Below, piece by piece: positions 21,169 to 52,792 of a DNA stretch of 64,000 bases. Under the pieces are notes generated by a model, which was given only the letters and a program-made list of their open reading frames with translations, did no database searches and was not told the DNA's origin. The stretch spans positions 124,001-188,000 of the forward strand of contig OW569390.1 in assembly GCA_937625935.1 (NCBI GenBank), given 5' to 3'. How positions within the stretch are numbered: position 1 is the stretch's first letter; each line of letters opens with the position of its first letter. The position numbers were made by a program, and so were the translations under genes. The stretch comes from Tetramitus jugosus. Taxonomy: Eukaryota > Protista > Heterolobosea.

Positions 21169-21480
21169 GCACTTGGGACACGTCGTGTCCATATCTTCCA
21201 CCCCGTAGAGATGTTTGGCTTTTGACTTGTGCAACGAACCACTCAAGCTGTCTATCAACCCTAAAGTGCATTTCATAAAGGAGCAGTCTGTTGCACCTCC
21301 CAAACATGCCTTCTGAATCCACCACAACTTCGACCGATCTTCTGCTGCTGTTTTTCTATCACTTCAAAATTATCCTTGCACATCAGTATTGGTAGGGTTG
21401 CAGAACGATCGTGTGTGTCGTTGCATTGTAGGAGTTCAAGGTCCATGAGAATGTATCTCTTGCGCTCGACAATGGGCCAG
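21169..21480 (-). mobile_element. highly decayed family-B-like non-LTR retrotransposon fragment
   Basis: frameshifted translations WWIQKACLGGATDCSFMK / VDRQLEWFVAQVKS / KHLYGVEDMDTTCPKC match WWVQKAANYSGADFSFLK..VDRRLEWFQLQVRS..RGLYNPHNASIMCSWC in ORF 33387-34571. Confidence 0.65.
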
Positions 21481-21486
21481 AAAAAC

Positions 21487-21718
21487 TTTTTTTGTTTTAA
21501 TACAACCATTTCGGCTGCTCTGATTTTATTTTCTGATAATTTACACTGGATAACGCTCGAAGAGCGTTATCTCCTCTGTTACTTTTCATTTCTCACAATG
21601 ACGCTCGTAGAGCGTCATTGTTATGTGTCTTCCTTGTGGGAGATGAATAGGCGATGAAGGGTGTCGACGCACCTCCTCTTCACCCTGTTCACGAATGATT
21701 TTGCTTTCTTTTCCGCCA
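21487..21718 (-). mobile_element. family-B retrotransposon 3' fragment (ORF2 tail, 3' UTR, poly(A))
   Basis: encodes AEKKAKSFVNRVKRRCVDTLHRLF..stop (cf. AVKKARIYVNGVKRRCLTTLLHLF); same hairpins, AATAAA and ..GGTTGTATT-poly(A) end as 33246-33400. Confidence 0.9.
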
Positions 21719-22536
21719 TGAGCTATTGTGCAGGTCTCTTCGCTATCGGGTCTTTCCAGACTTTGTACATTCGTTTGATACAAGATCTTTTCATTGCATT
21801 TACCAATCTTTTCACTTTTGTTTCCCGCTTCTTGCGGCCATACACTACTATTTCCTTCATCAGTACCTCCTTCTGGTCCTCTTCTTTACCCATTAGTCCT
21901 GCCAGCAGCTCTTCCGATGTTCGACTGGGGATCCGAGGTAGCATTTTGCCATCATCGTACACCGCATTGTCAAACCAGAGATTGAGCTTGGCTGGTCTCA
22001 TAAACTCCAGTTTGTTCAATGAAACCTTGAATTCTTCCACTAGTTCGCTTCTTGCTCTTTTGGCTTCTTCACACTCCACCAAGAGGTGTAGTATCGTCTC
22101 CGGTTCGCTCTTGCAATGAGCACACATGGTCTCCATCAGTGGTTCATACAGGTCTCGTACTACAGTCTTTGTGTGCAGAGTGCCACTCCGGACTTGGTGA
22201 TAGAACCACAGCTCACCTCTTTCTAGACCGAAAGGGCACTTCAAGAACTCATTCCACTCCTTATCCTTCTGCAGTTCAGCTTCTAACTTCCAGTTTCCAT
22301 CTGATTTTACAGACTCAGCTCTTACTTGCGCAAAATGTTCCATCAAACCTTCTCTTACATTGGGATTGCTGAGAACACTGCCATCTGCCGTCACTTCTAC
22401 TGGCATCTTTCATTGCTCTCTGCTTCCTCCAACTTTCGTCACATGGTTTTCCAAGGAGCTCCATGTAGGCCTTTATCCTAGAGTACCTTGCAGGACCGAC
22501 TCCTTTCAGCTTGAACTTCTTCTTGGCCTCCTCCAG
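21719..22536 (-). mobile_element. 5'-truncated family-A retrotransposon (ORF2 C-terminus, frameshifted near 22410)
   Basis: translation closely matches ORF 36954-38180 (EWNEFLKCPFGLER.ELWFYHQVRSGTLHTKTV; CAHC..PETI.HLLV.C); homology stops about 44 bp upstream of tRNA-Ser. Confidence 0.92.
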
Positions 22537-22579
22537 TAATCAATTTTTGGGTAATGAGATAATTTCTTGAATACAACAA

Positions 22580-22661
22580 GCTCATTTGGCCGAGTGGTTA
22601 AGGCGGCGCACTGCTAATGCGTTGGGTTCATCCCGCGTAGGTTCGAATCCTACAGTGGGCG
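22580..22661 (+). tRNA. tRNA-Ser(GCT)
   Basis: cloverleaf GCTCATT/AGTGGGC; anticodon arm GCGCA-CTGCTAA-TGCGT; long variable arm; GTTCGAATC; T5 terminator follows. Confidence 0.96.
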
Positions 22662-22774
22662 ACTTTTTGGGTTATTCTTGTTTCTTTAGATTTTGGCAAT
22701 AGGCCCACCAAATTCTGGCGTATCATTCGGTTAATACAATGCGTCCTCATAAGATAAGATGATTTTATTTAATC

Positions 22775-25700
22775 TTAATCTTTTCTCTTTTGTCGTAGGG
22801 CTGCAGTCTTTCTGTCCTTCTCTCGATCCTTTTGATGACACAAAACACATCTGACACCAGACTCACCTTGCGAGTCTTCCAACCTGTGTCGGTACTCCTC
22901 CAAAGAAACAGGTTGAGATCGGCCAGTGACTGGATCTACCTCCTCCTTGGGCATAGTGAGCTTCTCCTCAGCTGCGCCGTTCGCTCCCTTCTCCTTGCGT
23001 TGCTCATTTGCTTGGACAGAAAGGAAACATGGTACATGATATGCGTGACCACACATAAATATCATTGTGTGTTCCTTTGATGAGCTTCGTAGCATATTAC
23101 CACAAACGACACATCTCTTCATGGAACTCACTTTGACGGCCTTTCTTTGTTGCTTATGGAGCATATGACTCAAACTCCGGGTATCAGTATCCAGAACTTG
23201 TTGACAACCCTTTTGGAGAGTCAGTTGCAAAGAATAATCCGAGATTACGTTGGCTAGCTTGTATTTGAGATCAGGTATGCGCATTTGATCTGGAATAGAT
23301 TGTATGAGGGTCATAGGATCCATATGATCCATTGCATCATGTGAATAATCAGCCATATGATCCAACAGGCCAGCAATAAATGTTCCATTGTTCAACGAGT
23401 ACTTGATCAGATCTTGCCACAACTCTGCGTCACGCTGCTTATTTACAAATCCGATTGCGAAATTCACATCTTGCAGCTTGTTAATAATCAATTGAAGAGC
23501 GTCCTTCGTATTACCCATACGACCTAATAAATAAACTATACTTTGATACAATCGGTTTCTGTTGAGTTCGAGCTCTACCGTGACGTTACTCTTGGCACTC
23601 TGTGGATCGGCCTTCAGCACCTCTAATTCATCTTCACAGTTTTCGAGGAATCCTTCGCAAACAGCTAGTGCCTTTTCAATATTGTAACTCTGACTCTGTT
23701 CCAAGAACCACACAAGTTTTTCTGTATCAAACTCGGCATAAAGCTCAACTTGAAGCAGGTGGAATTTGCTGGACTTGCTGCTGTGTCGCTTGAACAGGGC
23801 GTCAAGATACATGTGGAGCAGTTGTCGATCGTCCTTGAGCTGTCTAACCACCTTGTCAACTTGAATCTGTTCTACATTGTTCATGAGCAAATCCAATGCT
23901 CGTGCTTCATCGAGCTTTAGCAAAACGATAATCTTGTCCTGAATCTGTGAGAACAGTTCGTGTTGCTCAATAAACTGGAACACTCTTTCTGGAGTTTGCT
24001 TCAACTGAAGATAGATGTCCAATGTTTTTTCATACTTTTGCTCACTTGTGTAGAGTTGAGCCAGAGTGTTGAGCAGTGCAATACGTCTAACTTGTTCCTC
24101 CTCAGTAGGTGCTGAGTTATCTTGCTTTGGTGTGTACTCCTTCTTGATCTGCTCTGTAACAGCAGTGATAATGTGTTGGGAATTGTACAGTTCTTTTGGC
24201 ATGGATTGAACAGCTTGGAGCAGCCTTGGTGCACTTGTGAACAGATAGTGGTTCAACAACATTTCATAAATCGTGTCACTCAATCTCACCTTTGAGAAGT
24301 CTATCTTCTTATCAAGTGCTCTGAATGAAGGCTCCTTGGTCAGAGCAGTGGGTGGATCGAAATCAAAACCAGTCAGAGTTGGTGTGACGGCAGTAGGACT
24401 CAATGAATCTGACATCATTCTGCCACCAGGAATAGGAATGTATGGAACAATGGTATCAAACTTTTTCTTTTGAATGAATGACCATATCCATTTCTCCCAT
24501 TCTTCAACATTGGTGCCTGCAACTTGTGGTACAAGCTGAGCAGCCTTGTCCCACTCTCCTCTGCCTAACAAGAACGAAATGTATCGTCGCCCAATATTCT
24601 CAATCGAGTAGTCAGGCTTCATCACCACTCCCAGTTTGCTCTGCTCATTTGCATAGTCCAATGCCAATGTAAATTGATCTTTGGCCAACAACCATTGCAT
24701 GTGATCATCTGCGTCTCTTGGCTTTGCAACAACGATATCTCTCTGAGATAGAATATAGTATGCATTGTCAATCTCACAATACTCAAGTCTATAGTCATGC
24801 ACTGAATAATTTTCATAGTTTTTGATGGAGAGAGCATCGCAAGACAACTCCTCTCCCTTCATGTCCAATATTCTCAATTCAGGTCGAGGAGCACTGGTTC
24901 CTTGATGTTTTTGATTCGATCCCTCTTCTTCGTCATCATCTTCGTCCTCATCAGAATCAGAGTCCGCTGTTGGATCATATGCGAGCAACAACAACTCATT
25001 GTTACCATACGGTTGAATACCACAAATCAGAAAATCAGTGTCAAACATAGCCATAATCTCAACAACCTTGTTTGGTCCTCTCGAGTCCTTTGGCAATGCA
25101 GGACTAATCACACGATCCTTAATATTTAACACTGCAACACTTGTTCCCCAGCCGACAATCAATCGATCTTCACCTCTTGGTGTTTCGTGCCACACCAAAT
25201 TACATCTGCATGTGCCCTTGTTCTCAGAACCCTTTTGTCTCGGTATATACGACACTTTTTCATTATCAGTCACATTATATATTTTTACACCTTGATCATT
25301 GGCCCATGCAATCAAGTTTTTGAACCACCGAATCGCATGAATTGGGCCTTCATTCTTATGAATAATGGTTTCCTTGTAGCCGAACCATCCCTTCTTCATA
25401 AGAATGAGTTTACCTGGTCTTCCACCACAAATGACTCTTTCGTTCCTTCGTACGTACTCTGGATCGACCTGTACACAAGAAACACCACCCTTTAACAATA
25501 TATCCAAACTATCACCATTGTTTGCTCCAGTAGTACTGCTCTCCCTTGTACCACTAATGGACAAATCAACACCACCACCACCTCCACCACCACCAACACC
25601 AATCGGCTGTTGACCTGCTGACACATCACACAAATTTCTCACCACAATTTTTCCATCATCCGAACAACTAGCGACATAATCACCGTGCAAATCAATTGAC

Positions 25701-26104
25701 ACGTCTCTCACTGCTCCTACATGAGGCCTAAACTTTTCTCCACAATAACCCTCAAAATTCAACAAGTACAAAAAACCGAGATTCGTCCCCAGAATAATCA
25801 ACTTGTCACTTACGCACAGAGCAGTTGCCGTATTGTTTTCTTGTTCAAAAATAGTAGGTAATGAACCGACTAGTCTTTGATATTTGAGTTGTGGTTCATA
25901 CTCTGATGAGTCATCATCATCATCTTCATCATCTGCTTCTTCTTCTTCATCATCATTTTCGTCATTTTCTTCTTCTTCATTTTCTGTTGTAGTTTCTTCT
26001 TCTTCTGATTCATCATCAGTATCATCATTGTGTGGTTGTTGTTGTTGTGGTTGATCTGCTGATGATGCTTCAGAGGAGTCAAGAGTTTGATTCTTGTGTG
26101 TCAT
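22775..26104 (-). CDS. VPS41: HOPS subunit Vps41
   Basis: EPQLKYQRL, WD propeller (IAWANDQGVKIY), DIVVAKPRDADDHMQWLL, clathrin repeat (YLLGRMGNTKDAL) and C-terminal RING; first ATG at 26104. Confidence 0.95.
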   Translation of the reverse strand: MTHKNQTLDSSEASSADQPQQQQPHNDDTDDESEEEETTTENEEEENDENDDEEEEADDEDDDDDSSEYEPQLKYQRLVGSLPTIFEQENNTATALCVSDKLIILGTNLGFLYLLNFEGYCGEKFRPHVGAVRDVSIDLHGDYVASCSDDGKIVVRNLCDVSAGQQPIGVGGGGGGGGVDLSISGTRESSTTGANNGDSLDILLKGGVSCVQVDPEYVRRNERVICGGRPGKLILMKKGWFGYKETIIHKNEGPIHAIRWFKNLIAWANDQGVKIYNVTDNEKVSYIPRQKGSENKGTCRCNLVWHETPRGEDRLIVGWGTSVAVLNIKDRVISPALPKDSRGPNKVVEIMAMFDTDFLICGIQPYGNNELLLLAYDPTADSDSDEDEDDDEEEGSNQKHQGTSAPRPELRILDMKGEELSCDALSIKNYENYSVHDYRLEYCEIDNAYYILSQRDIVVAKPRDADDHMQWLLAKDQFTLALDYANEQSKLGVVMKPDYSIENIGRRYISFLLGRGEWDKAAQLVPQVAGTNVEEWEKWIWSFIQKKKFDTIVPYIPIPGGRMMSDSLSPTAVTPTLTGFDFDPPTALTKEPSFRALDKKIDFSKVRLSDTIYEMLLNHYLFTSAPRLLQAVQSMPKELYNSQHIITAVTEQIKKEYTPKQDNSAPTEEEQVRRIALLNTLAQLYTSEQKYEKTLDIYLQLKQTPERVFQFIEQHELFSQIQDKIIVLLKLDEARALDLLMNNVEQIQVDKVVRQLKDDRQLLHMYLDALFKRHSSKSSKFHLLQVELYAEFDTEKLVWFLEQSQSYNIEKALAVCEGFLENCEDELEVLKADPQSAKSNVTVELELNRNRLYQSIVYLLGRMGNTKDALQLIINKLQDVNFAIGFVNKQRDAELWQDLIKYSLNNGTFIAGLLDHMADYSHDAMDHMDPMTLIQSIPDQMRIPDLKYKLANVISDYSLQLTLQKGCQQVLDTDTRSLSHMLHKQQRKAVKVSSMKRCVVCGNMLRSSSKEHTMIFMCGHAYHVPCFLSVQANEQRKEKGANGAAEEKLTMPKEEVDPVTGRSQPVSLEEYRHRLEDSQGESGVRCVLCHQKDREKDRKTAALRQKRKD

Positions 26105-26319
26105 CTTTTGATAATGTTTGTTGTGTTGGTTGTGTTGTTGGTTGATGATGATGTTTTTTCTCTCTCCAATAAACAAAAGAAGGAAGAAGCTTTTTTGTGT
26201 TTTTTGACATGAGAAAAAATGGATCTTCTGATGCGGAAAAATAATGGATAGGCGGAGATTGGAAGGTATGCTTTCCGTGAACTACAATGTAGGTGTTAAG
26301 ATTTTTGTTGTGATTTGTT

Positions 26320-26523: not shown

Positions 26524-26602
26524 TGTCTGTTTTATGTGAGTTTAAATACCGCGAGTTTTCAAAAAGCCGTTCTGAATAGCGGACATCCGGCGTCTCTATC
26601 TT

Positions 26603-31735: not shown

Positions 31736-32716
31736 CTAGGAGATGCTCACAAGAGTTGTTGAGCGTGACTTACAAAAGTCAACCACCTTTTCGATGAAAG
31801 CAGGATCTCGTCCACTCTTAAACCAAGTGAGTGAGCGAATATTCTTCAAATGGGCTAATGCATTCTCAGTGATCGTTTGTTGATCACAGCCACTCATTGT
31901 AAGTTTGTGAACACCAACCAAATAGGGAAATGCCTGATCCGTGATGTTCGTACACTCAATCATTTCAAGTGTGTGAATACCAGTCAGGTGAGTGAATGCC
32001 TTGTCTGTGATTTGAGGGCAATAATTCATACTTAGTTCCTGAATACCAGCTAAATGAGAGAAGGCTCGATCTGTAATTTGACCACAACGACTGATATTGA
32101 GCGTGTGGATGCCAGTCAAATGACGAAATGCATTGTCGGAAATGTTGTTACAAAACATTATATCAAGAGTGTGAATGCCCGTCAAGTAAGAGAGTGCATC
32201 GTCCGTGATTTGATAACAATGCTTCATATCTAACGTGTGAATGCCAGTCAAATGAGGAAACACCTTGTCTGTGATTTGCTTGCAAAAACTCATATTGAGT
32301 GTGTGAATACCAGTCAAGTGAGAAAAGACTTGATCTGTAATTTGCTCACAATCACTCATATCAAGTGTGTGAATGCCTTCCAAGTATTGGAAATGCCTAT
32401 CCCTGACATTGGGATGCCACCAAAAACCTACATTAAACAGTGTACCTTTGTTCAATTGAAACCAGGAGTCAATTTCTTGGTCATTCCAATGCGATTTTAG
32501 TGTTCTCTTCTTGTTGTACATGATGGATCGATTGTACTTAAATTGATTAATTCCCTTGCAAGTGTGACTCAATTGCATCCATTGACGAGTGTCACAAAAT
32601 TCGATAATGATGGTCCATACATCATGGCAAAGTGCAGAACAAATTTCAATTGTTTCACACTTAACATGTTCATTGTCTATTGCATTCTTGTTTTCTTCAG
32701 CTGCATGTTGCTTCAT
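31736..32716 (-). CDS. F-box/LRR protein
   Basis: LCHDVWTIIIEFC..LSHTCK F-box followed by 25-aa repeats LTGIHTLxMxxCxQITDxAFxH. Confidence 0.88.
   Translation of the reverse strand: MKQHAAEENKNAIDNEHVKCETIEICSALCHDVWTIIIEFCDTRQWMQLSHTCKGINQFKYNRSIMYNKKRTLKSHWNDQEIDSWFQLNKGTLFNVGFWWHPNVRDRHFQYLEGIHTLDMSDCEQITDQVFSHLTGIHTLNMSFCKQITDKVFPHLTGIHTLDMKHCYQITDDALSYLTGIHTLDIMFCNNISDNAFRHLTGIHTLNISRCGQITDRAFSHLAGIQELSMNYCPQITDKAFTHLTGIHTLEMIECTNITDQAFPYLVGVHKLTMSGCDQQTITENALAHLKNIRSLTWFKSGRDPAFIEKVVDFCKSRSTTLVSIS
31850..32400 (-). repeat. 75-bp-period coding tandem repeat (LRR), about 7 units
   Basis: recurrent gtgtgaat(a/g)ccagtca motif at about 75-bp spacing. Confidence 0.8.
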
Positions 32717-32954
32717 TTTTGTTTTTTTTGAGCGAAGAGATTGAGTATGCCCTTTTTTTGATTTGTTTTTCACTTAAAGTGAGTTGGCCACGAAATAGAT
32801 CAGGAGGTTCAAGTCCTCTGAAGGATAATTGGGATGCTTCTTTCCGATCAGTCACTCTTAACTGACAGCAAACCACCCAAGGCTTGAGAACTGGTCAGCA
32901 GCTGTTCAACGACCTGACTGAGAACATTTCTCGATGAATTCACGAATTTCATTT

Positions 32955-33230
32955 TCTGAGGGGTTGATGGAGGGTCGTGAGACATCTCCGCTTCTCACTG
33001 CTCACGAATGTTTAGCTTTCTTGGCAGCTACTGACTTCTTCATCCCGTTAAGCACCAGTCCCTCTGTTACCTGTTAGATGACATCTACCTAGATGCCCAT
33101 CATTCCTCCTTGAAGGTTTTCTTTGCTGGTTTTCTTGATTGATCTTCGCGACAGCTTGCCTTCCCTCAGTCGAAAATTGTCAACGAGAAACACCAATCTC
33201 GCGCCACACCTAGCTCCACTAACTCGTGCC
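32955..33230 (-). mobile_element. old decayed family-B-like retrotransposon fragment (ORF2 C-terminus)
   Basis: HELVELGVARD / DNFRLREGKLSRRSIKKTSKENLQGGMMGI*VDVI*QVTEGLV..KKAK / FVSSEKRRCLTTL aligns with the C-terminus of 33387-34571; contains stops and frameshifts. Confidence 0.8.
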
Positions 33231-33386
33231 ATCCGTTTGTGGCGCTTTTTTTTTTTTTTTTTTTTTTAATACAACCATTTCGGTTGCTCGCTTGCTCGCT
33301 TTATTGTCTTTTGTTTTCTTCGGCCATCGCTCGAAGAGCGATGACCCTTGGTCACCTGATTAATTCTCAATGACGCTCGCAGAGCG

Positions 33387-34571: not shown

Positions 34572-34572
34572 A

Positions 34573-36834: not shown

Positions 36835-36953
36835 GTATCCGTTTGTGGCGCTTTTCGGCTAATTTTTTTTTTTTTTTCCATACAACATTTGTTGCCCCTT
36901 TATTCTATCCACTACAGTGAGACGTGGTGTCGCTCAGAACCGCAGGTTCTGAG

Positions 36954-38180: not shown

Positions 38181-40792
38181 AGAGGTAACCTTTTCATGGC
38201 ACTCGATCCATGTTTCACTGCCTTGCGTCCAATCCCCTCAATTTCGTTTAGCCACTTCTTTGGCCAATGGGTGAACTCTGAAGCAAACAAGAATACAGGA
38301 TGGACGCATGTGTTCACTATTCTCGCTACCTGACTTGGCCCCAACTTCAGCATCCTCAACCGATTCAGGATTCTCAGTACCTTTTGCTTTGCTTGTTTCT
38401 TTTGGGCCTCTGTGTCCCCATTAAGATTTGTAAAGAGCCCAAGCGCTCTAAAGCCTGTGTGTTTGTCCTTTGCAGTAATCACCTTACTAGCCACTCTGAT
38501 CGTCACAGGATCTTCACCCACTTTCCTTGCGAAGAACTCCAACTTGTCAGGGTGCATACTCAGACCAACCCACTTGAGCGCCCTGTACATATCATTAGCC
38601 GTTGACTGGATGTCCTGGAGATCATCACTGAAAAGGTTGCAGTCATCAACGTAAGCCACGTTCCAGATTCTCTGGCTCATGGCTTGGTATCCGCTTGCTC
38701 TTTGCTTTACATAAAGCAACACTAACTGATGAACTATCACATAAGTCGTGGGAGACAAGGAATCCCCTTGCCTCGTGCCTCTGTTGATGTCAATCGACCG
38801 TGATGCGAGTTGGGTTCCTATTGTGGCCACATTCGATTCCAACATGTTCCTGATGAGCGTGATGATACCCTCTGGGAAGTTGAAAAACCGGTAGGCAGCA
38901 GTGACTGCATTGTGTGGTACACTGTCGAATGCCTTCGAGATGTCGGTGAGCAGAAGATACAACTGCTTATCACTTCTATTTGCGTGATCAATCACTCCTC
39001 TGATGATGGACAGCTTTTCTCTGATGTCACGCATTTTACGACCTCCACCCTGCGTGTTGTAGAATACACTCATTTTCTCAGCAGCAGCTGACACTCTTTG
39101 GTTCAGCAGCCGAGTGAATACCTTTGAGAGACCACTGAGCAGGCATATAGGGCGAAAGTTCCCTATCACCATAGGGCAGCCCTTCTTGTACGCCGGAACT
39201 ATAACACATCTCTTCCATTCACCCGGGAATTCCCCGGTCTCTAGTACTCTGTTGAAGAACATCATCAGCACCTCTGCAAACTCAACTCTATAATCTCTTT
39301 CCTTGGTGTGCCTCAATTTGAGCATTTCATTGAATATCTTGTCAACTCCCGGTGCTTTACCGTTTCGCAGCCACTTTAAGGACTGCAGTACCTCCTCCAC
39401 CTTGAACGGGGGAAAAATATCCTCCATACTCTGAGTCCTGCATCTCATCTCGTCTAGGAACGTCATGTCTGCAAATTCTTGCTCAAACACCTCCTCAAAG
39501 TAATCAGCAGCATGCTCAGCTACCTTATCCGGGGCAGTTATCACCGTTTCTCCACTCTTATAACTCTTGAACCTTAGTCTCAGTGCCTTCTTACCTGTGG
39601 CAGCATTGAAGAAAAGTCGGGGGTCCACGAATTCTGAAGTTCTGACTTTGTACAGCCACCTGGAAAACCTCTTGTTAGCCCTTCGGGCTCTTTCAGCTTG
39701 TACAAGCCCCTCTACAATCTTCAGTGATGCCAAAACACCTCTCAGAGTACAGTCCTCCTTGTATGCCTTGCAAACCCTCATGAGTTTCGGTGAACCGGTG
39801 TCATGGGAAGACAGCCGCTCCACTAAAATCGTTCTATCCTTCAGCCAACGTCTAACTCTGCGGTTGTCAATTCCTCTAGCAACTGGTTTACACTTCGGAA
39901 ACCTCTTCGCACTTTCCCTTAAGATCACAGTGATCCGGTCACATTGTTCATCAACATCCAGTTCCGCCATGTTGGTTTTATCTAGCCCTTCAACCACCTC
40001 TTTTGAGTACTCTATCCACATCTTGCTTTCCCTCTTTGGGAACTTGGGCCTTTCTTCCGTGGACCCTCTTTCCTCCACCTTTGTCCACCATATCTTTACC
40101 ATCGTAGGTATGTGATCGCTCCTTACCCCATTGGTTGTGTACTTCTCCACATCTCTAACAATGTCAGTGGCTGGTGAATTGCACCAGATTGAGTCGATGC
40201 GAGAAGAAAACTCGCCTCTAAAGAACGTGTGAAAATGGGGTGTACCTGTAACTGTATTAACATCGCTCAGTTGAAGTCCTTCCACCATTGCCTTAAAATG
40301 GGCACTATTGTCATCTAACCTTCCAGAAGTCCTCTCAGTATTGTTTATCACTGTATTGTGGTCCCCACCAAACAATAGTTTCCCTCTGCATGAGAGCTCT
40401 CTCAATGTTTCATTGATCATCACATAGTGATGTCCTCCTTCTGTTCTTTTGTGAGGTCCGTAATGATTGACTAGGGTTACTCGCAGATCTCCGCATGCAA
40501 TCTCTACAGCCAACAATCTTTGGTTAGTCACCAGTGTTCTGTACTCTTGAATGCTCTCTCTTCTTATTATCGTCATTATTCTGTCATCTGTGTTGGTGTG
40601 TATCAACATACACCCAGCATACTCCAGCTGCTTTTCGAAAGCCGCTTTGAACTTTTCACTCTTGCAACTCGCCTCTTGCAGCATCAGAACATCAATCCTT
40701 GGGATGATCGCCTCCATCATGGCAACAACATCGTTTCGTTTCCCTCCTAACCCTCTGATGTTGTACCAAACGACATTGAGTGTCGTACTCAT
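38117..40792 (-). CDS. family-A ORF2: complete APE endonuclease plus reverse transcriptase
   Basis: WYNIRGL, LMLQEA, NHYGP, GGDHN, SRID, SDH; KAPGVD, FRPICLL, DISKAFDSV, GTRQGDSLSP, AYVDD. Confidence 0.97.
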   Translation of the reverse strand: MSTTLNVVWYNIRGLGGKRNDVVAMMEAIIPRIDVLMLQEASCKSEKFKAAFEKQLEYAGCMLIHTNTDDRIMTIIRRESIQEYRTLVTNQRLLAVEIACGDLRVTLVNHYGPHKRTEGGHHYVMINETLRELSCRGKLLFGGDHNTVINNTERTSGRLDDNSAHFKAMVEGLQLSDVNTVTGTPHFHTFFRGEFSSRIDSIWCNSPATDIVRDVEKYTTNGVRSDHIPTMVKIWWTKVEERGSTEERPKFPKRESKMWIEYSKEVVEGLDKTNMAELDVDEQCDRITVILRESAKRFPKCKPVARGIDNRRVRRWLKDRTILVERLSSHDTGSPKLMRVCKAYKEDCTLRGVLASLKIVEGLVQAERARRANKRFSRWLYKVRTSEFVDPRLFFNAATGKKALRLRFKSYKSGETVITAPDKVAEHAADYFEEVFEQEFADMTFLDEMRCRTQSMEDIFPPFKVEEVLQSLKWLRNGKAPGVDKIFNEMLKLRHTKERDYRVEFAEVLMMFFNRVLETGEFPGEWKRCVIVPAYKKGCPMVIGNFRPICLLSGLSKVFTRLLNQRVSAAAEKMSVFYNTQGGGRKMRDIREKLSIIRGVIDHANRSDKQLYLLLTDISKAFDSVPHNAVTAAYRFFNFPEGIITLIRNMLESNVATIGTQLASRSIDINRGTRQGDSLSPTTYVIVHQLVLLYVKQRASGYQAMSQRIWNVAYVDDCNLFSDDLQDIQSTANDMYRALKWVGLSMHPDKLEFFARKVGEDPVTIRVASKVITAKDKHTGFRALGLFTNLNGDTEAQKKQAKQKVLRILNRLRMLKLGPSQVARIVNTCVHPVFLFASEFTHWPKKWLNEIEGIGRKAVKHGSSAMKRLPLCCCQWRGTMVALDSMNSKRV

Positions 40793-41795
40793 AGTTCGCT
40801 TTGTTCGTGCTCTTGTGGAACAACACTCTCTTGAGTACTGTTCACTCGAATGGTTCCATTAGGGGAATTTGTCATAATTATCTTCCTTTGTACATCTTCA
40901 TCGTCTACTTCCCTGGCATCGCGCTTCTTTCCTCTGTTGCTTACAAAATCATCCATTCTCCTCTGACCTTTATCAATCATTAGTTTCCCTCTGTTTTTTA
41001 TTTGGACCACAGGTGTGTTCACCAAATCATCCTCCATCGTTTGCACTGTATTCATTGGTTCCTCCAGTTCATTCCTAGGTGTAGTAGCTTTTTCTTGCAT
41101 GGTGCTTTTGTTCGCTCCATCCTGCTTACTCGCCCTAAGTCTCATCTTCATCATTTCCGACTTGAGAATTCGAATTTCTTCCACACTCCTCCTGTAATCA
41201 TCTAGCATCTTGTTCATGTCTTCTTGAAGCTGTGCTACATTTCTCTTCAATACGTCCATTGGTTCGAGTGTTTTGTGTACAAATTTCCTTGTCTTGGTGT
41301 TGCCCATGGGTGTCTTTTCGAGCAATGCATTCGCATAACTCGGGCCTTTGGTGGATACAATGGCGGAGTTCCCTCTTAATTCTACTCTTTGAACATTGTC
41401 CCGACCAGCCCAAGTTTCAATATCTTCCTTGCTGATCTTCCCTGCTCCGGTAATTACTACGTCATGTGTAGCTCTCATTCTCCCATTGACGCTTGCCTTC
41501 GAATCCTTCAACACTTTTGTGCAGTTGAACACTGAATGAATTCCCAAACTTTGTCATCTCTGACAATTATCCACGCCTTGTAGCTTTCACCTCTCCTAAC
41601 AACTTGTACCCTCTCAACCCACTCCGAGCAGCTAGCAACCAGTTTATTCACTATTGCTTCTGGAGTAACATTGCTGCACCTCCCAGTGACGACTACTTCG
41701 TCCCTCTTCGTAGCTGCTTCCTTGCTCATCTTTGTCCATACAACATATTGACTTCTGCGGATCATTACCGCCTGTACTGACGGTCCTTGTGACAT
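40789..41795 (-). CDS. family-A ORF1 (two RRM-like modules plus coiled coil), split by a frameshift at about 41508-41547
   Basis: ORFs 41508-41795 and 40789-41547 overlap; DEVVVTG..ERVQV..AWII and HDVVITG..QRVEL..SAIV repeats; stop overlaps the ORF2 start as ATGA. Confidence 0.75.
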
Positions 41796-41858
41796 GTGTT
41801 CGCGTTTTTTTTTTGCGCTTTTCGGCTAAATAATGCGATTTTTCAAAATTAACAACAA

Positions 41859-41930
41859 GGGATTGTGGTCTAGGGGTATGATTCTTGCTTAGGGTGCAAG
41901 AGGTCCCGGGTTCGATTCCCGGCAATCCCC
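41859..41930 (+). tRNA. tRNA-Pro(AGG)
   Basis: GGGATTG/CAATCCC acceptor; CTTGC-TTAGGGT-GCAAG anticodon arm; CCGGG-TTCGATT-CCCGG T arm; T4 follows. Confidence 0.97.
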
Positions 41931-42223: not shown

Positions 42224-45200
42224 ATGTTGTCACTGAACCGATTAGTGACCGTTTTTGACAGTTCACCTCACTTTCCCTCCAAAAATTCCAATCAACATTC
42301 CTCCGCTGCTGCTACAGCAGGGGGTAGTATCAATAGCGGAGGGGCACGAGTCATGTCCATGAGTGATCAATTACAACAACAGCAGCAACAACAAGTGATT
42401 GGATATGAACGAGATCGTTGTAGCTTTCTAGTCAATTCATGCAGCAGAAACAGTAACCAAATTGAGTTGATTCAATTGGTTCCTCACCAAAAACAACAAG
42501 TCATTATGACTACAACAATGAACAATCATCATCCACTCTATCAATCAACAACAACAAGTGGAAAACAGCAACAACAACAACAACAGCCGAGCATTAACAA
42601 CAACAAACGTCATAGTAGTAATCGAGAAGAAATCAATCATCACAGTGAAGAGAGTCATCATGATGATGAAAATGATGATGATGATGACATTCGTGTCATG
42701 ACACCTAGTGAAGGCACTGATGCTCCTCCTCAACCAACAATTACAGTTTCTCAACCAAGAAGTATATCATCCAACAAGCAACAACAACAACAACAAAATG
42801 ATTCAACCTTACAACAACAACAACAACCATTACAGAGTACAGTAGTGACTGTTCGATCATTCAAACGATCACAGAGTATCACACTGTGTCAAATGGATCC
42901 TTCATTGCACTGTGTCAGTGCATCCATCAACACGAGTAGTGCTCACATTGTTGCCATGACTACTCTGAGGTACACTATTGTCAATGCCACGAGCAATCCG
43001 GTGAGTAGTGGACTGTATGAAACATTTTTGATACAATTGTCGGATTATACGAATCATTTTGATCAGAAACAACCCATATTGTTCAAACGGTCCAACCACT
43101 TTCAAAGGATACAGTTCGTCAGTGAAAATTCCTTTTTATTTTTTTGTGTCAATGAACCGCGAAATAATATTGGAGGTGGTAATAGTGGTAGTAATAGTAG
43201 TGGTGGTGGTAATGATCATTCAAATGTGAGTACTGCCTCGTTTCGAATCGAACTCTACAAATTCCAGTTGAATAAGAAGACGGGTCAGATGATGACAGCT
43301 CCGACACTCTATATGCTCATTTGTGATTCCTGTATGTGGTTTCAGTGGGATCCTGACATGTCCTATTTGTACTATATGGCATCGAATAAGCGAAAGGATG
43401 ATGGATCAACTGCATCGTCGTCATCTTTGTCATCATCGTCATCGTCGTCACACAATAACGCAACGCTGTATGTTTCGTGTTGGGCGTTGACCGAGAGCGT
43501 AAAGGTGGATCCAGTTTACAGGTACAATGTGCCCATTAAAGAGTCTGATTGCTATCACAATCATGACAAGTACAGAAAGAAGAGAGCAAGTGCAGATTTT
43601 TCGAATCATGTCTCACATCAGAGAATGCTCATGAAGGGATGTTGTCCTGGAATGGACTTTACGATAGTGTCTTTGGACAATAATGTCGATTGTTTGTGTA
43701 AGCAGGAAATTCATGACGTAGCACCTAATCGTAGATACATTATGATTCAAATATTTATTTTAACTCATCAACAAACAATCAAGTTTGCGATTCCAATTGG
43801 AAGACATGACGCTCAGAAATTTGCATTCTTTGGACGACAAAAGAATGTGCTTATTGCCTATGTTCCCGGCATCTTTTTGAAAATGATAACGATAAACAGG
43901 AACGAACAACCTGCCAATTTGGTAACATTATCTGCTGCCTCTAACGACTCTTCGCAATCCATCTCGAATCTATCCAGTGTCTGTAAGAGATCCATGGAGA
44001 GTGAAGCACAACTTATTCCCATTTTTTCCCGATTTAAGGCAGACTCATATGTGCTAAACACAACGAATGGCGAGATCTATTCCTATTTGATTAACAGTCC
44101 AGCTCTGCTGCACCTACTCAAAGCGAACTATATGAAAAATAATAACATTGAGAGATTGTTACCAATGTTGAATTGGTCGATCATGCATGAGTCCCCACTG
44201 AGGAAACACATTGATAACTCTCTACAACTTGACTTTTCTTTCCCAGAAATGATTATTTATAGTCTATATCAGTATAACAAGGAGTATTCACGTCAAAGAC
44301 TACAAAGTACCTATTTATTCAAAGAGTTTATATTGGCGACATCTTTTATGATCGCGTCTGACATTTATAAGATGGAGGTGGAATTTTTGACATGCATTCC
44401 CAACTCTATCATTGCTGCCCATCCATATCACAAGGTTGGTTCTGCTCCTCCCATTAATCTGCTCGCGGAAGTCGGCCGTAGTCCCACATGGAATCAGGAT
44501 GAACGAAGTCTACCTGCTTCTGCAAATCAAACACCCATATCAGATATGCTGCTGAAAAATCCATACGAAACAGAAGACAGTTTATCTCCTAGTTCAGCCC
44601 CTGCTATAGTGAAGACTCTGTGGCAGAAATTATCCAATAAGCCTGAGCAGGAACACGTATCGGAGCCGCAGTCGACGATACCAAGATCTCCCAGCGAAAT
44701 GGCATTTGATAAGTTTATTAAGACCAAACAGGAACATATTGAATCAGATTATATTGCCCTTTGTTGGCGATTTGCCTTCTATCAATCGCTTCGAGGTTGT
44801 ATCTCGAATGCAAAGATTGGTAAGGCTTGGGCTGCTAAAAAATGGGCAGCTGGTTATACCTTTATCGTCGCTGGTCAGGTTTCTAGATTGTTCCAAATCA
44901 TACAAAGTTTGTCAATCCGAGCTATTCAGTCACTGGATGTATCGAATGAAAATTATGGTCAAGCAACGCTCGAAGAATGCAAGTGGTATTTCCACCTGCT
45001 AGAATTATTCTATCGGACACTCGAGGAATTATCAGTGCCTGTTGCCCCACATTTTCACTTTGAATTCTCCTTGATTGCATTCCATGTTTTACCACGAAGA
45101 ACATTCATGCAATATGTGAGAAATAAGGTGATTTTTATTACGCAAGCATTTGTTGACTATATTCACTCGACTGAGTTGTGCAGAGATGCATCGTTTTACA

Positions 45201-50630: not shown

Positions 50631-51432
50631 CTTTTTTTCTCTAAAATGTTCCAACAGAAGTTCCAGATGCCACACAAATACTCTTTCAACAATGAGGGAT
50701 GACATGAACTCCCAGTTGCGGTTTGCTTACAACTGGTATCGGCGGCAGTTCCATAGGACCAAGTGTTTGTTGGGTGAAATTTGGGGTCAAAGTTAGAACT
50801 GGAATCAAAGTGTGACAAAACAAAGATGAATGACATTTGGACGCAAGTGTCACACTTTATCGTATTCAAGGAGATAATTAACACTCTGCAACAATTAAGG
50901 GCAAATGCACTACCTCTCATAAGTTCAAGGAGCGCTTACAGACTATCGAGAGCCATCATTGCGTTGCAAGATTTGGAAGACTCACAAGGAAGGACATTGA
51001 AGACTCTTCTTGTGAACAAGAAGACGTACAACATTTTGTTTCTGCCTTGCACTGTATCATGAGATTGGTGTAATTACTTCAAAATCATCGTCCACTCCTA
51101 CAACAACTTCATTTTTATCAACGCGTTGTTCGACAAAATCATTGTCATCGTTGTTGTGACTCCTTGATGCACTAGAAAAAAATTTTTCGAGTCCCATTGA
51201 TTTTTAGTTATTTTTTTTACTTCTGGAGGACCCTCATCCGGATGTCACATACAATAGAAGGAACCTTTTAGATACAGTAGCTTAGCACAGGTGACAAGAT
51301 ACTAGCCTTTTTTACAACGATATTTCATCTTCTTCATCTTCTTCAAACTCCTTCTGAAAAAGCCAAACTTATCATTAACTATCAAACAAAACTTCGTTTG
51401 TGTATGATTTAATGTCAAATTTTAGTTTGTAT

Positions 51433-52170
51433 TTACAATGGTTTTGTGGGATGATCAATTGTCAACTCAGAACTGCACTCTTCCGTTCGATAACCGAAAG
51501 GAACAGTTAAGAACACAACTTCAGGCATGTAAGGTATCTCCAGAGTGGCCGATGCCATGGCACTGAAACATTGCTTCTCAAAATTAACCCTAATATCACT
51601 GAATGACAAACAAAGATTCACTTGCAATTGATCCAACACTGGTACACAAATTGGAATTCTCATGTCAGACATTGACACATCCTTCTCGTACACTGTATAG
51701 TCATTGACTATCATTTTAAAGTAGGCAGACTTGTGAATAATATCAATGGCTCCTGATGTGCACAGTGTCAATTTCATCAACTCATGATTCAGTAGTTCAA
51801 TGTTCATTGGCCCCACGCAACATGAAATCTTGTAGTCATCGATATCGCACTTTCTATTGACCATGAATCGACCCTTGGTTGGCTCAAGTTGTTTAACGAG
51901 TTGACTGTACAACAAGTATTGGTTCAATCGAGTGTCATCACTGGTTCCTCCATTCTCGAAACGTTTCTTGTTTTGAGGACGATTGTATCTCATCTTGGGG
52001 GTGTCATATGCAATTTGAGCCTTTCTAATGAGGGAAGCACGGAGAATATCGTCATACTTTTTGGCCAGTGGGACTCGATCGACTCTGACCTCAGAGTGCA
52101 CAACGAGTAGAGAAGAAGTCAGTATGCAAAAGAGCAGTAACAGGAGAAGGGATGAGTGGTTTTGATTCAT
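51433..52170 (-). CDS. secreted Cys-rich protein (DUF4773-like)
   Basis: signal peptide; Cys pattern C..SCC..LC..PICVP..LCLSF. Confidence 0.6.
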   Translation of the reverse strand: MNQNHSSLLLLLLFCILTSSLLVVHSEVRVDRVPLAKKYDDILRASLIRKAQIAYDTPKMRYNRPQNKKRFENGGTSDDTRLNQYLLYSQLVKQLEPTKGRFMVNRKCDIDDYKISCCVGPMNIELLNHELMKLTLCTSGAIDIIHKSAYFKMIVNDYTVYEKDVSMSDMRIPICVPVLDQLQVNLCLSFSDIRVNFEKQCFSAMASATLEIPYMPEVVFLTVPFGYRTEECSSELTIDHPTKPL

Positions 52171-52514
52171 AATGTTGATGTATTGTCAGTGGTTTCTTTG
52201 TATTCACACTCTGATTGAAAAGACTCAAGGAAAGCTTTTTTCGGTTGACCAGATCTCTCATCTGGATATTTCAGGAATTATTTTCAGTAAACAAGAAAAA
52301 CAAATACGTGTTGCCTTGAATAAATAACAAAACAAACACATCCGATCCATCCTTGGCAGTTTTTCTGGACAAGAATACATCGTAAAATGTCGAGTTTTGG
52401 GAAGAGGGAAAGGTCCAGTATCTAGCACGCAACTCACCTGATCACAATTCAAGGCTCGCAATTGAATCACTCCAGGTCTTCTTGGAACCACGCGTACAGC
52501 TTCTGGGCGTGCAG

Positions 52515-52656
52515 TTTTTTTTGTTTTTTTTAATACAACCATTGCGGTTGCTCACTTTATTATCAATACATTTTCATCAGCCATCGCTCATTGAGCGATG
52601 GTTCTTGGTCTTCTGATTAATTCCCAATGACGCTCGCAGAGCGTCATTGCTGTTGT
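52515..52656 (-). mobile_element. 142-bp family-B 3'-end-only insertion
   Basis: poly(A), AATAAA and the same hairpins as 33268-33392; TSD CTTCTGGGCGT(G/T)CAG at 52500-52514 and 52657-52671 (14/15 identical). Confidence 0.93.
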
Positions 52657-52710
52657 CTTCTGGGCGTTCAGATGAGCGGGAATATCATCCTACAGTTATA
52701 CAAATAAGAA

Positions 52711-52792
52711 GCATGCGTGGCCGAGTGGTCTAAGGCGTCCGACTCAAGTTCGGATATCTCCGGATGCGTGAGTTCAAATCTCACCGCATGCA
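52711..52792 (+). tRNA. tRNA-Leu(CAA), copy 1
   Basis: GCATGCG/CGCATGC acceptor; TCCGA-CTCAAGT-TCGGA anticodon arm; variable arm; GTTCAAATC. Confidence 0.96.

Follow-up and report, generated by a model that had tools for sequence, protein, structure and literature searches.

Position-specific integration of LINEs beside Pol III genes has previously been described only in dictyostelid amoebae. In D. discoideum, TRE5 inserts 40-54 bp upstream of the mature tRNA in the opposite orientation, also hits 5S genes and depends on TFIIIB, and binding of TFIIIB by the TRE5-A ORF1p has been shown experimentally (PMC5911963, PMC5006619). TRE5-A has a modular 5' UTR. NLTR-B from Polysphondylium (Heterostelium) pallidum, a LINE unrelated to the TREs, inserts in a TRE5-like manner about 50 bp upstream of tRNA genes. 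TRE-like elements were not found even in other Amoebozoa, and the origin of the behaviour remained an open question (Spaller et al., 2016). Among elements of S. cerevisiae, Ty3 uses TFIIIB and Ty1 the Pol III subunit AC40 to land upstream of tRNA genes. R1/R2 and Keno, Mutsu and Dewa of the Tx1 group are LINEs confined to multicopy RNA genes, sparing single-copy genes.

Here we show that a LINE family of Tetramitus jugosus inserts positionally and in one orientation about 30-55 bases before tRNA and 5S genes. The window analyzed comprises 64,000 nt (positions 124,001-188,000 of contig OW569390.1, assembly GCA_937625935.1) and contains four tRNA genes, all on the + strand, three of which carry minus-strand LINE pieces. 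The initial annotation had listed these three and missed the fourth, an identical second copy of tRNA-Leu(CAA).

~21100-21486, - strand: older 5'-truncated LINE remnant, distal in the tRNA-Ser stack (ORF2 C-terminal Cys-rich end and stop)
21487-22533, - strand: 5'-truncated LINE copy, proximal in the tRNA-Ser stack (ORF2 C-terminus, 3' UTR with two hairpins, A-rich tail)
22580-22661, + strand: tRNA-Ser(GCT), target gene (ARAGORN; Rfam RF00005, 59.5 bits)
~32970-33230, - strand: degenerate LINE remnant past the 3' TSD of A, the oldest of three layers in the tRNA-Pro stack (tblastn)
33246-36836, - strand: element A, 5'-truncated LINE with RT, C-terminal domain, 3' UTR and 22-nt poly(A) (Pfam RVT_1, 1.8e-27)
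36863-41814, - strand: element B, full-length LINE of 4,952 bp (Pfam RVT_1, 1.4e-27; Exo_endo_phos; zf-RVT)
41805-41814, - strand: oligo(A)10 at the 5' end of B, followed by a 7-nt leader
~40789-41797, - strand: ORF1 of B, broken near 41530-41550
38117-40792, - strand: ORF2 of B, APE and RT part
36954-38180, - strand: continuation of B ORF2 past the frame change, Cys-rich tail
36863-36877, - strand: poly(A)15 at the 3' end of B, preceded by the 3' UTR
41859-41930, + strand: tRNA-Pro(AGG), target gene (ARAGORN; Rfam RF00005)
52515-52656, - strand: 142-bp LINE 3' end, 5'-truncated (two hairpins, AATAAA, terminal hairpin, A-rich tail)
52711-52793, + strand: tRNA-Leu(CAA), target gene (ARAGORN; Rfam RF00005)
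54944-55026, + strand: second, identical tRNA-Leu(CAA), upstream region empty (ARAGORN; Rfam RF00005)

The LINE pieces number six, or seven if the frameshifted ORF2 of B is counted as two, and all lie on the minus strand. Each locus adjoins the 5' flank of its tRNA gene, with the 5' end of the element facing the tRNA, and the proximal junctions lie 44-56 bp from +1, namely at 46 bp for Ser, at 44 bp (54 bp counting the oligo(A)) for Pro and at 54 bp for Leu. The initial annotation, which had claimed seven pieces at three loci, all on the opposite strand with 5' ends toward the tRNA and junctions at 44-55 bp, therefore held on these points. The distal Ser remnant, whose boundaries are approximate, is similar in nucleotide sequence (21212-21331) to an ORF2 C-terminal piece in another genomic locus, L007, and ends on the minus strand in ...CPKCNFKLYGSLV-stop. 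The proximal Ser copy shares 75% nucleotide identity with B (36950-37763) and with locus L002, and 74% with the B ORF2 C-terminus by tblastn. In the oldest Pro remnant, tblastn matched the ORF2 C-terminus at 32970-33008 and 33041-33181, again with approximate boundaries, and the 142-bp Leu piece is 80% identical in nucleotides to the 3' UTR of A. Folds of the 3' UTRs gave z values of -6.8 (proximal Ser copy), -5.0 (A) and -4.6 (Leu piece). At the frame change of B (38183/38186), contigs of other runs contain one extra letter. The second tRNA-Leu gene belongs to a duplication with short flanks (52702-52799 = 54935-55032) and shows no element homology in the 2.2 kb upstream, so that it represents an unoccupied site and an internal control.

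Target-site duplications (TSDs) of 15 bp define the insertion points. Element B is flanked by TTAGCCGAAAAGCGC (36848-36862 and 41815-41829, 15/15 identical), located at -44..-30 of tRNA-Pro, and element A by GCGCCACAAACGGAT (33231-33245 and 36837-36851, 15/15 identical), with its original site at -55..-41 of the same gene. At the Leu locus, CTGAACGCCCAGAAG (52657-52671) and CTGCACGCCCAGAAG (52500-52514) agree in 14/15 positions and the site lies at -54..-40, while at the Ser locus no TSD was readable in the sequence. Other TSDs of 15 bp in the genome were located at -47..-33 (twice, same site), -38..-24, -58..-44, -45..-31, -44..-30 and -44..-31, and at L002 the very same 15-bp site was used repeatedly. 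The first nick is made in the tRNA-sense strand, usually some 30 nt (range 24-44) before the 5' end of the mature tRNA; the second lies 15 nt further upstream, which yields the 15-bp TSDs. A/T-rich TATA-like stretches are present just downstream of many nick sites. In a comparison of 11 TSDs and their flanks, from nine Pol III genes, no common motif was found, and since the TSDs share no motif, targeting is positional.

These insertions show the hallmarks of target-primed reverse transcription, i.e., poly(A) of 12-39 nt, 15-bp TSDs, 5' truncation at many points and no LTRs; the 3' UTR carries hairpins and a poly(A) tail. The elements are LINEs of the APE type, in which ORF2 has an AP-endonuclease-like domain at its N-terminus, then RT and finally a Cys-rich tail. 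In ORF2 of B (38117-40792, - strand), Pfam detected Exo_endo_phos at aa 9-213 (weak) and RVT_1 at aa 536-761 (1.4e-27), and ORF2 homologues carry PF03372, PF14529 and PF00078, while neither C-terminal part of ORF2 gave a Pfam match to RNase_H, even at E values of up to 1. ORF1, for which Pfam gave no match by sequence, combines RRM-like domains in tandem with a coiled coil and a disordered tail. In an AF2 model, aa 10-175 form two alpha/beta domains (pLDDT about 90) and a helix (180-231) follows; the top PDB structure matches in Foldseek were the tandem RRMs of HuR, U2AF65 and SFPQ/NONO (prob 1.0, E 6e-5). As predicted from this model, ORF1 resembles an ordinary RNA-binding LINE ORF1p, with nothing in it pointing to TFIIIB. 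In every full-length copy of all lineages, the 5' end consists of an oligo(A) of variable length (5-36 nt), with only 2-9 nt separating it from the ORF1 start codon.

Several lineages share this one target, with ORF2 mutually 42-65% and ORF1 21-27% identical. A non-autonomous lineage that contains only ORF1 hits the same target, with at least 60 copies with open frames, and outnumbers any autonomous lineage listed. HAL1 (half-L1) of mammals and deletion derivatives of TRE5-A keep ORF1 and the 3' end and borrow ORF2p in trans. The ORF1-only lineage has the same make-up, but differs from them in its abundance and in keeping the Pol III-gene target. Recent activity is indicated by at least eight open ORF2 frames (1267-1318 aa) and by copies that are 97-99% identical, with perfect TSDs and poly(A) of up to 39 nt.

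In the 26-Mb genome, ORF2 gave 57 matches, grouped into 40 clusters; for the first 20 of these, the 5' flanks were retrieved. In 19 of these 20 loci, following the flank led to a tRNA gene or relic or to a 5S gene, in most cases at a distance of 41-58 bp and in 18 cases head-to-head; in nearly all fetched loci, homology to other copies ends 41-58 bp from the gene. A tRNA gene was present within 8 kb on the 5' side in 17 loci, 16 of them head-to-head, and beyond those 17 one locus ends at a B-box tRNA relic and another is the distal part of the same stack. L007 has a 5S gene, head-to-head as well, and L014 is also canonical, at 45 bp from a split tRNA-Trp. For L001 alone among the 20, no Pol III gene was found nearby. 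The exception in arrangement is L005 (+ strand), where a stack lies downstream of the tRNA in the same orientation and a minus-strand piece ends only about 10 bp from the tRNA. The 5' end always points toward the gene and the poly(A) end away from it, and stacks arise as new copies re-enter the same 30-nt zone and push older ones outward, all on one strand.

For tests based on coordinates only, the reference was an independent list of 190 Pol III genes, itself incomplete. A listed gene lay within 6 kb on the 5' side of 31 stacks (29 on the opposite strand), compared with 5 for the 3' side (p = 1e-5 and 5e-7). Conversely, for 40 of the 190 listed genes the 3 kb upstream contained an element on the opposite strand, while the other three configurations occurred 1, 4 and 2 times. 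The 17 ORF1 starts with a listed gene within 200 bp lay 45-175 bp from it, 15 of them at 45-74 bp, and 16 were on the opposite strand. Targets include at least 17 anticodons and dispersed chromosomal 5S genes, eight listed 5S genes having an element upstream on the opposite strand. Metagenome contigs displayed the same element-gene junction; an empty-site allele from other strains was not recovered. These genome-wide counts exclude chance for the window pattern. The claims of three readable 15-bp TSDs and of positional rather than sequence-specific targeting held, and opposite-strand placement near Pol III genes, claimed for the window, extends to the genome with the exceptions given above; the GGCGC/GGCGT core noted in the initial annotation is not general.

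Three explanations that dispense with positional targeting were considered. In the first, survivorship, insertion would be more or less random and only harmless copies beside tRNA genes would persist. The genome is indeed very gene-dense, with long ORFs back to back, so that selection against genic insertions must be strong. However, survivorship cannot yield a 30-nt window, a fixed strand (29/31; 40 vs 1, 4, 2) or the reused 15-bp site at L002; tRNA 3' flanks and other intergenic DNA are equally harmless yet unused, and very young copies (perfect TSDs, 97-99% identical) are already in place, which makes this explanation very unlikely. Very unlikely, too, is a sequence-specific APE that reads a DNA motif upstream of Pol III genes, as in R1-, Tx1- or Dada-type elements. 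GGCGC/GGCGT in two TSDs and the TATA-like stretches near many nick sites speak for it, but the 11 TSDs and flanks lack a common motif, the targets, at least 17 tRNA species and also 5S genes, have unrelated DNA upstream, and the nick shifts over about 20 nt whereas the orientation is constant. Elements of the R1/R2 and Tx1 groups enter a defined sequence inside the gene, whereas the LINEs studied here insert outside, by distance and into unrelated sequences. Finally, tRNA genes might be co-mobilized with the element, by 5' transduction or as tRNA-derived heads, and the duplication of tRNA genes with short flanks, as for tRNA-Leu, is in agreement with such hitch-hiking. This is all but ruled out, as the TSDs enclose the element alone and leave the tRNA gene outside, one element lineage occurs beside 5S genes and many tRNA species, the spacer of 30-45 nt separating element and gene is different at each locus, and of the two identical tRNA-Leu genes one has no insertion.

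The host belongs to the Naegleria group of heterolobosean amoebae and is not a dictyostelid, as had been supposed for the latter part. The protein test for this rests on Vps41 alone, for which the four best named matches were all from heteroloboseans (Willaertia, Naegleria, Percolomonas; 38-41% identity), other named proteins reaching at most 35%. The RT sequences form a monophyletic clade (SH-aLRT 100) on a stem of length 0.88, in a tree that left out TRE5/TRE3/NLTR reference sequences. An exhaustive HMMER search of 1.84 billion representatives revealed no RT relatives above about 30% identity outside fragments of the own family, the named ones among the best outside matches being arthropod and fish LINEs, and the sole matches to ORF1 were three unnamed metagenome proteins. 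The literature searched contained no description of such elements in Heterolobosea, and in that scope the claim of an undescribed system held.

The main rival is that these elements are true relatives of dictyostelid TRE5 or NLTR-B, and that targeting arose once and was spread by ancient inheritance or horizontal transfer. The geometry is indeed the same as in TRE5 (TRE5-A/B/C, also of other dictyostelids), i.e., insertion upstream of tRNA genes (40-54 bp there, 41-58 bp here) in the opposite orientation, 5S genes as further targets, stacks and a compact genome. The two also share the make-up of an APE-type LINE, with ORF1, an ORF2 of APE, RT and Cys-rich parts, an oligo(A) tail, copies often truncated at the 5' end, and TSDs of about 15 bp. 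As both hosts are bacteria-eating soil amoebae, transfer is conceivable. However, the hosts belong to Heterolobosea (Discoba) and Dictyostelia (Amoebozoa), no close sequence relationship is detectable, the RT clade stands alone on its long branch, and ORF1 has no named match. In addition, the oligo(A) and 2-9 nt leader are unlike the modular 5' UTR of TRE5-A, the 5S targets are dispersed chromosomal genes whereas those of TRE5 reside on the extrachromosomal rDNA element, the abundant ORF1-only lineage sets the heterolobosean system apart, and Spaller et al. detected no TRE-like elements even in non-dictyostelid Amoebozoa. NLTR-B shares LINE insertion upstream of tRNA genes and provides a precedent for convergence within LINEs, but it has a single ORF with RNase H downstream of RT, whereas the heterolobosean LINE has two ORFs without detected RNase H, and the host phylum differs. 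Kinship thus appears unlikely, and an origin of targeting independent of TRE5, as initially proposed, is the probable but unproven alternative, the tree containing no TRE5, TRE3 or NLTR reference sequences. The LTR elements Ty3, Ty1 and dictyostelid DGLT-A resemble the present LINEs in insertion upstream of tRNA genes, the safe haven, the compact genome and a link to the Pol III machinery, which is inferred here; they differ in possessing an integrase, in inserting in either orientation and in distance (Ty3 at the TSS, Ty1 in a window of up to about 1 kb, DGLT-A 13-33 bp upstream).

Because the targets share their initiation machinery and not their sequence, the element proteins most likely recognize a Pol III factor or DNA shape. 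In the proposed mechanism they would dock on such a factor or shape at the upstream boundary of the Pol III pre-initiation complex, with TFIIIB/TBP and possibly TFIIIC as candidates, and the insertion site would be a safe haven in the gene-dense 26-Mb genome. A TFIIIB tether, in line with the Pol III tethering suggested in the initial annotation, remains unproven and is inferred only by analogy to TRE5-A, without protein-protein or protein-DNA evidence; a co-fold of ORF1(1-250) with the host TBP core gave no verdict. Taken as a whole, positional targeting via the Pol III complex, independent of TRE5, in a heterolobosean, is the likely explanation. In a bolder and improbable reading, targeting would be promoter capture besides safe haven. 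As only oligo(A) and 2-9 nt precede the ORF1 start, there is no room for an upstream internal promoter; the element 5' end is always placed 15-25 bp from the target's TATA-like/TFIIIB site, facing away, and from this fixed placement a reliance of element transcription on the target's TBP-containing complex may follow. Start-site slippage would then make the oligo(A) leader, selection for expression would act on the fixed distance and orientation, and the element's partnership with Pol III genes would be an obligate one.

Positional targeting as documented here constitutes a second such LINE system, in a heterolobosean and thus far removed from dictyostelids in the eukaryote tree, and its elements are unrelated in sequence to the dictyostelid ones or at best very distant. 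The insertion distance, orientation, TSD length and 5S targeting are nearly identical. Further features of the system are the abundant ORF1-only lineage that parasitizes it and the unusual oligo(A) at the 5' end. In practical terms, such a programmable-looking, harmless landing site may serve as a model for safe-harbour insertion, and the several diverged lineages with one target should be useful for finding the targeting determinant by comparison. If convergent, these systems would show that target-primed reverse transcription has a strong preference for docking at the upstream edge of the pre-initiation complex of Pol III, and would constrain models of how TRE5-A ORF1p, ORF2p and TFIIIB cooperate; if homologous, the trait would be far older than thought or would have moved between amoebae.

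ARAGORN and Rfam agreed on four tRNA genes in the window, all of them located on the plus strand. The LINE sequences of the window are found without exception on the minus strand. They are situated between the host genes, long ORFs free of introns that include the one for Vps41 (1133 aa).

tRNA genes and LINE pieces in the window (coordinates, strand, feature)
About 21100-21486, minus: older LINE remnant at tRNA-Ser
21487-22533, minus: 1.05-kb 5'-truncated LINE copy at tRNA-Ser
22580-22661, plus: tRNA-Ser(GCT)
About 32970-33230, minus: degenerate older LINE remnant behind element A in the tRNA-Pro stack
33246-36836, minus: element A, a LINE copy behind element B at tRNA-Pro, 5'-truncated within ORF2, with A22 at its end
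36863-41814, minus: element B, a full-length LINE of 4,952 bp at tRNA-Pro, with ORF1 and an ORF2 comprising an APE-like domain and RT
41859-41930, plus: tRNA-Pro(AGG)
52515-52656, minus: 142-bp LINE 3' end at the first tRNA-Leu
52711-52793, plus: tRNA-Leu(CAA), first copy
54944-55026, plus: tRNA-Leu(CAA), second copy, identical to the first

The initial annotation had described LINEs that abut tRNA genes in a single orientation, and this observation held in all essentials; the second tRNA-Leu, which represents an empty site, had gone unlisted. Two 98-bp stretches (52702-52799 and 54935-55032), in which tRNA-Leu(CAA) is flanked by 9 bp on the upstream and 6 bp on the downstream side, are 100% identical, which indicates a recent tRNA gene duplication of which only the first copy has been occupied. 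Elsewhere in the window, five tandem 66-bp units (31901-32377; 62-72% identity) represent ordinary LRR coding repeats inside a minus-strand F-box/leucine-rich-repeat ORF (31736-32773).

When the window junctions were read base by base, element B was found to be flanked on both sides by the target-site duplication (TSD) TTAGCCGAAAAGCGC (15/15) and element A by GCGCCACAAACGGAT (15/15), and the piece at the Leu locus is bordered by CTGAACGCCCAGAAG vs CTGCACGCCCAGAAG (14/15). With respect to the mature tRNA 5' end (+1), these TSDs are located at -44 to -30 for B, originally at -55 to -41 for A and at -54 to -40 for the Leu piece. The TSD of B overlaps the proximal copy of the TSD of A by 4 nt and therefore B was the later arrival in the same zone and displaced A outward.

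The window corresponds to positions 124001-188000 of contig C47 in a 26.35-Mb assembly of 56 contigs, in which ORF2 of element B yielded 57 matches grouped in 40 clusters. For the first 20 clusters, the 10 kb surrounding the 5' side were inspected, and in 17/20 loci a tRNA gene was located on that side at a distance of no more than 8 kb, in 16 of those 17 on the opposite strand. At L007, a tRNA-Tyr and a 5S rRNA gene are both arranged head-to-head with element pieces. The stack of L010 ends at a tRNA relic, spotted by eye, which is no longer recognised as a tRNA and retains a B box (GGTTCGAATCC, L010 2135-2145), and L009 is the distal part of the same one-strand LINE stack of at least 17 kb (C12:48,000-65,100). 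The LINE of L014 is found 45 bp from a 5' fragment of a tRNA-Trp that was split by a different mobile element. In this locus (L014:3021-5713, contig C16), the tRNA-Trp is interrupted after its first ~14 nt by an insert of ~2.5 kb that terminates in a complete tRNA-Trp, before which the same 45-bp upstream sequence is copied. L001 was the sole locus among the 20 without a Pol III gene, and an Rfam search of L001 and L010 revealed no further Pol III gene at either.

In nearly every case among the 20 loci, homology between copies ends 41-58 bp from the gene. A script that sought direct repeats between poly(A)-adjacent DNA and the zone from -80 to -15 found that at L002 the position -47 to -33 had been used twice, with the same 15-mer present in three copies, and other 15-bp TSDs at -38 to -24, -58 to -44, -45 to -31, -44 to -30 and -44 to -31. 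The targets comprise at least 17 anticodons as well as 5S genes, and no shared motif was found among the TSDs.

The initial annotation would have been refuted if most copies in the genome lay far from Pol III genes or in random orientation. A control that uses coordinates only, is independent of the fetched loci and replaced a 3'-flank sequence control was performed with 162 ORF2 pieces, merged to 93 one-strand stacks, and with 95 ORF1 starts. These were compared with an independent list of 190 Pol III genes (53 tRNA genes, 47 5S genes and 90 B-box sites). The B-box pattern yielded 244 matches vs 24 for the reversed pattern. The B-box sites of the list were restricted to contigs C1-C20, and the RF00005 tRNA search scored only 63 of ~1600 candidates. 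Occupancy figures are lower bounds because the tRNA list is incomplete in these respects.

Listed Pol III genes in relation to LINE stacks and ORF1 starts
Stacks whose 5' side has a listed gene no more than 6 kb away: 31, gene on the opposite strand in 29/31
Stacks whose 3' side has a listed gene no more than 6 kb away: 5
Binomial p: 1.3e-5 for side, 4.6e-7 for strand
Listed genes with an element within 3 kb upstream on the opposite strand: 40/190
Listed genes in other configurations: 1 upstream, same strand; 4 downstream, opposite strand; 2 downstream, same strand
ORF1 starts no more than 200 bp from a listed gene: 17, at 45-175 bp (15 at 45-74 bp), 16 genes on the opposite strand

Of the 5S genes in the list, eight are occupied. 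The result that would have refuted the proposal was not obtained in these genome-wide coordinate tests, and Pol III-gene targeting is real and strongly supported.

Exceptions to the upstream arrangement were also encountered. At L005, a minus-strand piece of a lineage that possesses only ORF1 ends ~10 bp upstream of a tRNA-Cys, and a divergent plus-strand stack, oriented like this gene, begins 12-40 bp downstream of it, an arrangement that corresponds to the geometry of the dictyostelid TRE3 elements. Two 5S cases, known from coordinates only, resemble this downstream arrangement.

Downstream pieces in the same orientation as a tRNA-Cys or 5S gene
L005:6742-7250 (contig C7)
C20:342739-343740
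C6:622097-623495

Such pieces might reflect a downstream-targeting lineage or a rearrangement; no inverted repeat was found around the tRNA-Cys in L005.

At least five lineages (B-like, L008-like, L011-like, A/L017-like and ORF1-only) share the same target. The first 170 residues of ORF1 are conserved across lineages that are otherwise 21-27% identical. An AlphaFold2 model of ORF1 displays two confident alpha/beta domains (aa 10-175, pLDDT ~90), a 50-residue helix and a disordered basic tail. Since the top Foldseek matches were tandem RRM proteins (HuR, U2AF65 and the RRM-RRM-coiled-coil proteins SFPQ/NONO), ORF1 is an ordinary-looking LINE RNA-binding protein. If intact, ORF2 consists of ~1280-1320 aa in the order APE, RT and Cys-rich tail, and no RNase H was found in it. 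In element B, the RT domain matches RVT_1 (1.4e-27) and the Cys-rich C-terminal part is encoded in another frame (36954-38180; weak zf-RVT), followed by the 3' UTR and A15. The ORF2 frame changes near 38180, and contigs of other runs have one extra letter at 38183 or 38186.

A common plan was observed for the 3' UTRs of all lineages, with one or two perfect 8-12-bp hairpins that have 3-4-nt loops and lineage-specific stem sequences, followed by AATAAA, a small terminal hairpin CAAC(C)-loop-(G)GTTG, the motif UGUAU(U/G)(A/G) and poly(A).

3' UTR signals in the window
21501-21630, minus
33271-33400, minus
36878-37007, minus
52531-52656, minus

The folds of these four copies had z values of -4.2 to -6.8, no shuffle being as good, and we infer that this 3' UTR arrangement probably serves as the recognition signal for the RT. 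The 5' end is unusual: in all full-length copies, the tRNA-proximal TSD is followed by 5-36 nt of oligo(A) and then by a leader of merely 2-9 nt before the ATG of ORF1. Examples are window positions 41805-41814, the junctions of L006, L008 and L015-L019, and the metagenome contigs L027, L028 and L030. Copies that are 5'-truncated lack oligo(A) at their 5' end. The oligo(A) might stem from a transcribed leader, from slippage or from untemplated addition; neither its origin nor the location of the promoter is explained.

In the ORF1-only lineage (~1.35 kb), a leader of 5-9 nt precedes ORF1 (388-435 aa), and the 3' UTR, which ends in poly(A), is of the LINE type; its copies are arranged head-to-head at tRNA and 5S genes as are the autonomous LINEs. 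At least 60 copies have open frames, exceeding every autonomous lineage listed.

Copies of the ORF1-only lineage
L019:5270-6600 (contig C24)
L006:4840-5655
L002:4039-4836
L009:5094-5892
L011:5531-6347

This lineage, which can be likened to HAL1, is a non-autonomous parasite of the autonomous LINEs. Recent LINE activity is signalled by ORF2 frames that are still open (at least eight, with lengths of 1267-1318 aa), by copies that are 97-99% identical, and by perfect TSDs and long pure poly(A) tails.

Integration bears the marks of target-primed reverse transcription. As read from the sequence, the cDNA strand is the tRNA-sense strand and therefore the priming nick coincides with the TSD border on the tRNA side. 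Its distance upstream of the mature 5' end is mostly 30-33 nt (range 24-44), and the second nick is located on the other strand 15 nt further upstream. Orientation is fixed, with poly(A) directed away from the gene, and A/T-rich boxes occur directly downstream of many nicks. The targets are Pol III genes unrelated in sequence, with internal promoters (type 2 for tRNA, type 1 for 5S), and the Pol III initiation complex would be their common denominator. In Dictyostelium, TRE5-A requires a functional B box and its ORF1p binds TBP, Brf1 and Bdp1 (PMC5911963). Because the targets seem to share only the Pol III complex, because the nick zone would coincide with the TFIIIB/TBP seat upstream of Pol III genes, and because of the TRE5-A precedent, we lean towards a mechanism in which the LINE proteins would be tethered to TFIIIB, or to DNA bent by TFIIIB, although this rests on analogy and not on binding data. 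The host TBP gene was located on contig C22 (L025:1309-2073). When residues 1-250 of ORF1 were co-folded with the core of this TBP, no verdict was obtained, and binding is thereby neither favoured nor disfavoured.

Among named proteins, the Vps41 encoded in the window was most similar to those of Willaertia magna (41%), Naegleria fowleri (41%), N. gruberi (39%) and Percolomonas (38%), with E values of 1e-235 to 1e-189 for the heteroloboseans, and those of fungi, animals and plants (29-35%) ranked below them; an unnamed Logan protein matched at 60%. DNA near-identical to the Vps41 gene (22775-26176) was detected in metagenomes of soil, groundwater, sediment and hydrocarbon origin as well as in metatranscriptomes of soil, from 15 studies in all. 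The host is thus very probably a heterolobosean (Discoba) widespread in soil and groundwater and not Naegleria itself, an assignment made from this one protein. In the assembly, contigs C54 and C56 have the same tRNA matches at the same coordinates (e.g., 12773-12844 and 44585-44656) and are likely an organelle genome or a contig duplicated in assembly.

An exhaustive HMMER search of 1.84 billion representatives returned short fragments of the family itself (37-79% identity; metagenomes and NCBI assembly GCA_037189345.1), beyond which identity fell to 30% or less, with named proteins from a pseudoscorpion, Artemia and a catfish. No dictyostelid protein was among the 20 hits of the ORF2 search that were looked up by name, the most AT-rich included. 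The AT-rich hits P0032 and P0036 both carry RNase H and are not closely related. In a quick ML tree of RT sequences, eight copies of the family formed one clade (SH-aLRT 100) with a stem of 0.88 changes per site and no supported sister among the 70 best hits. The ORF1 profile had only three matches, all unnamed metagenome proteins. A PDB sequence search retrieved R2 proteins (~5e-21) and L1 ORF2p (8e-12), which do not assign the clade, and Protein Atlas searches were uninformative as to both taxonomy and clade.

Metagenome scans with ORF1 and ORF2 yielded no relatives, and short contigs with ORF2 relatives lack a tRNA because they end inside the element. Three metagenome contigs with ORF1 relatives (37-58% identity) have the same junction as the genomic copies, in the order element 5' end, oligo(T), 42-52 nt and the start of a tRNA, namely tRNA-Lys(UUU), tRNA-Lys(CUU) and a Leu/Ser-type tRNA; their source may be this species or a relative of it. 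Sequence data of four runs over element B did not contain a clean empty-site allele, and contigs that leave the reference at 36836/36839 are probably longer paralogous copies. One groundwater run contained a head-to-tail joint of 41813 to 36867 with 8 nt between. Two soil-metatranscriptome contigs on the 3' part of element B offer at best weak evidence for its expression.

For TRE5 elements, the insertion distance is 40-54 bp upstream of tRNA genes, where the orientation is opposite, and 37-41 bp upstream of 5S genes. Dictyostelids carry both TRE5-like and TRE3-like elements, whereas none was found in Physarum, Acanthamoeba or Protostelium, and an independent LINE, NLTR-B of P. pallidum, also behaves in a TRE5-like manner (PMC5006619, PMC5911963). 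The heterolobosean family is like TRE5 in every geometric respect. A close relationship to the TRE clade is argued against by indirect evidence only (HMMER, RT tree and ORF1 profile), no TRE sequence having been part of the comparison. The full-text literature searched contained no description of tRNA-targeted LINEs in Heterolobosea, and a 2026 preprint on transposable elements of Acrasis, Naegleria and Tetramitus does not mention tRNA. The principle of Pol III-gene-targeted LINEs is already known, and the family described here consists of TRE5-like LINEs of this kind in a heterolobosean. Pending a direct phylogeny with TRE sequences, these LINEs are likely convergent with the dictyostelid systems, and features proper to them are the oligo(A) 5' end with almost no leader, the abundant ORF1-only lineage and the dispersed 5S targets.
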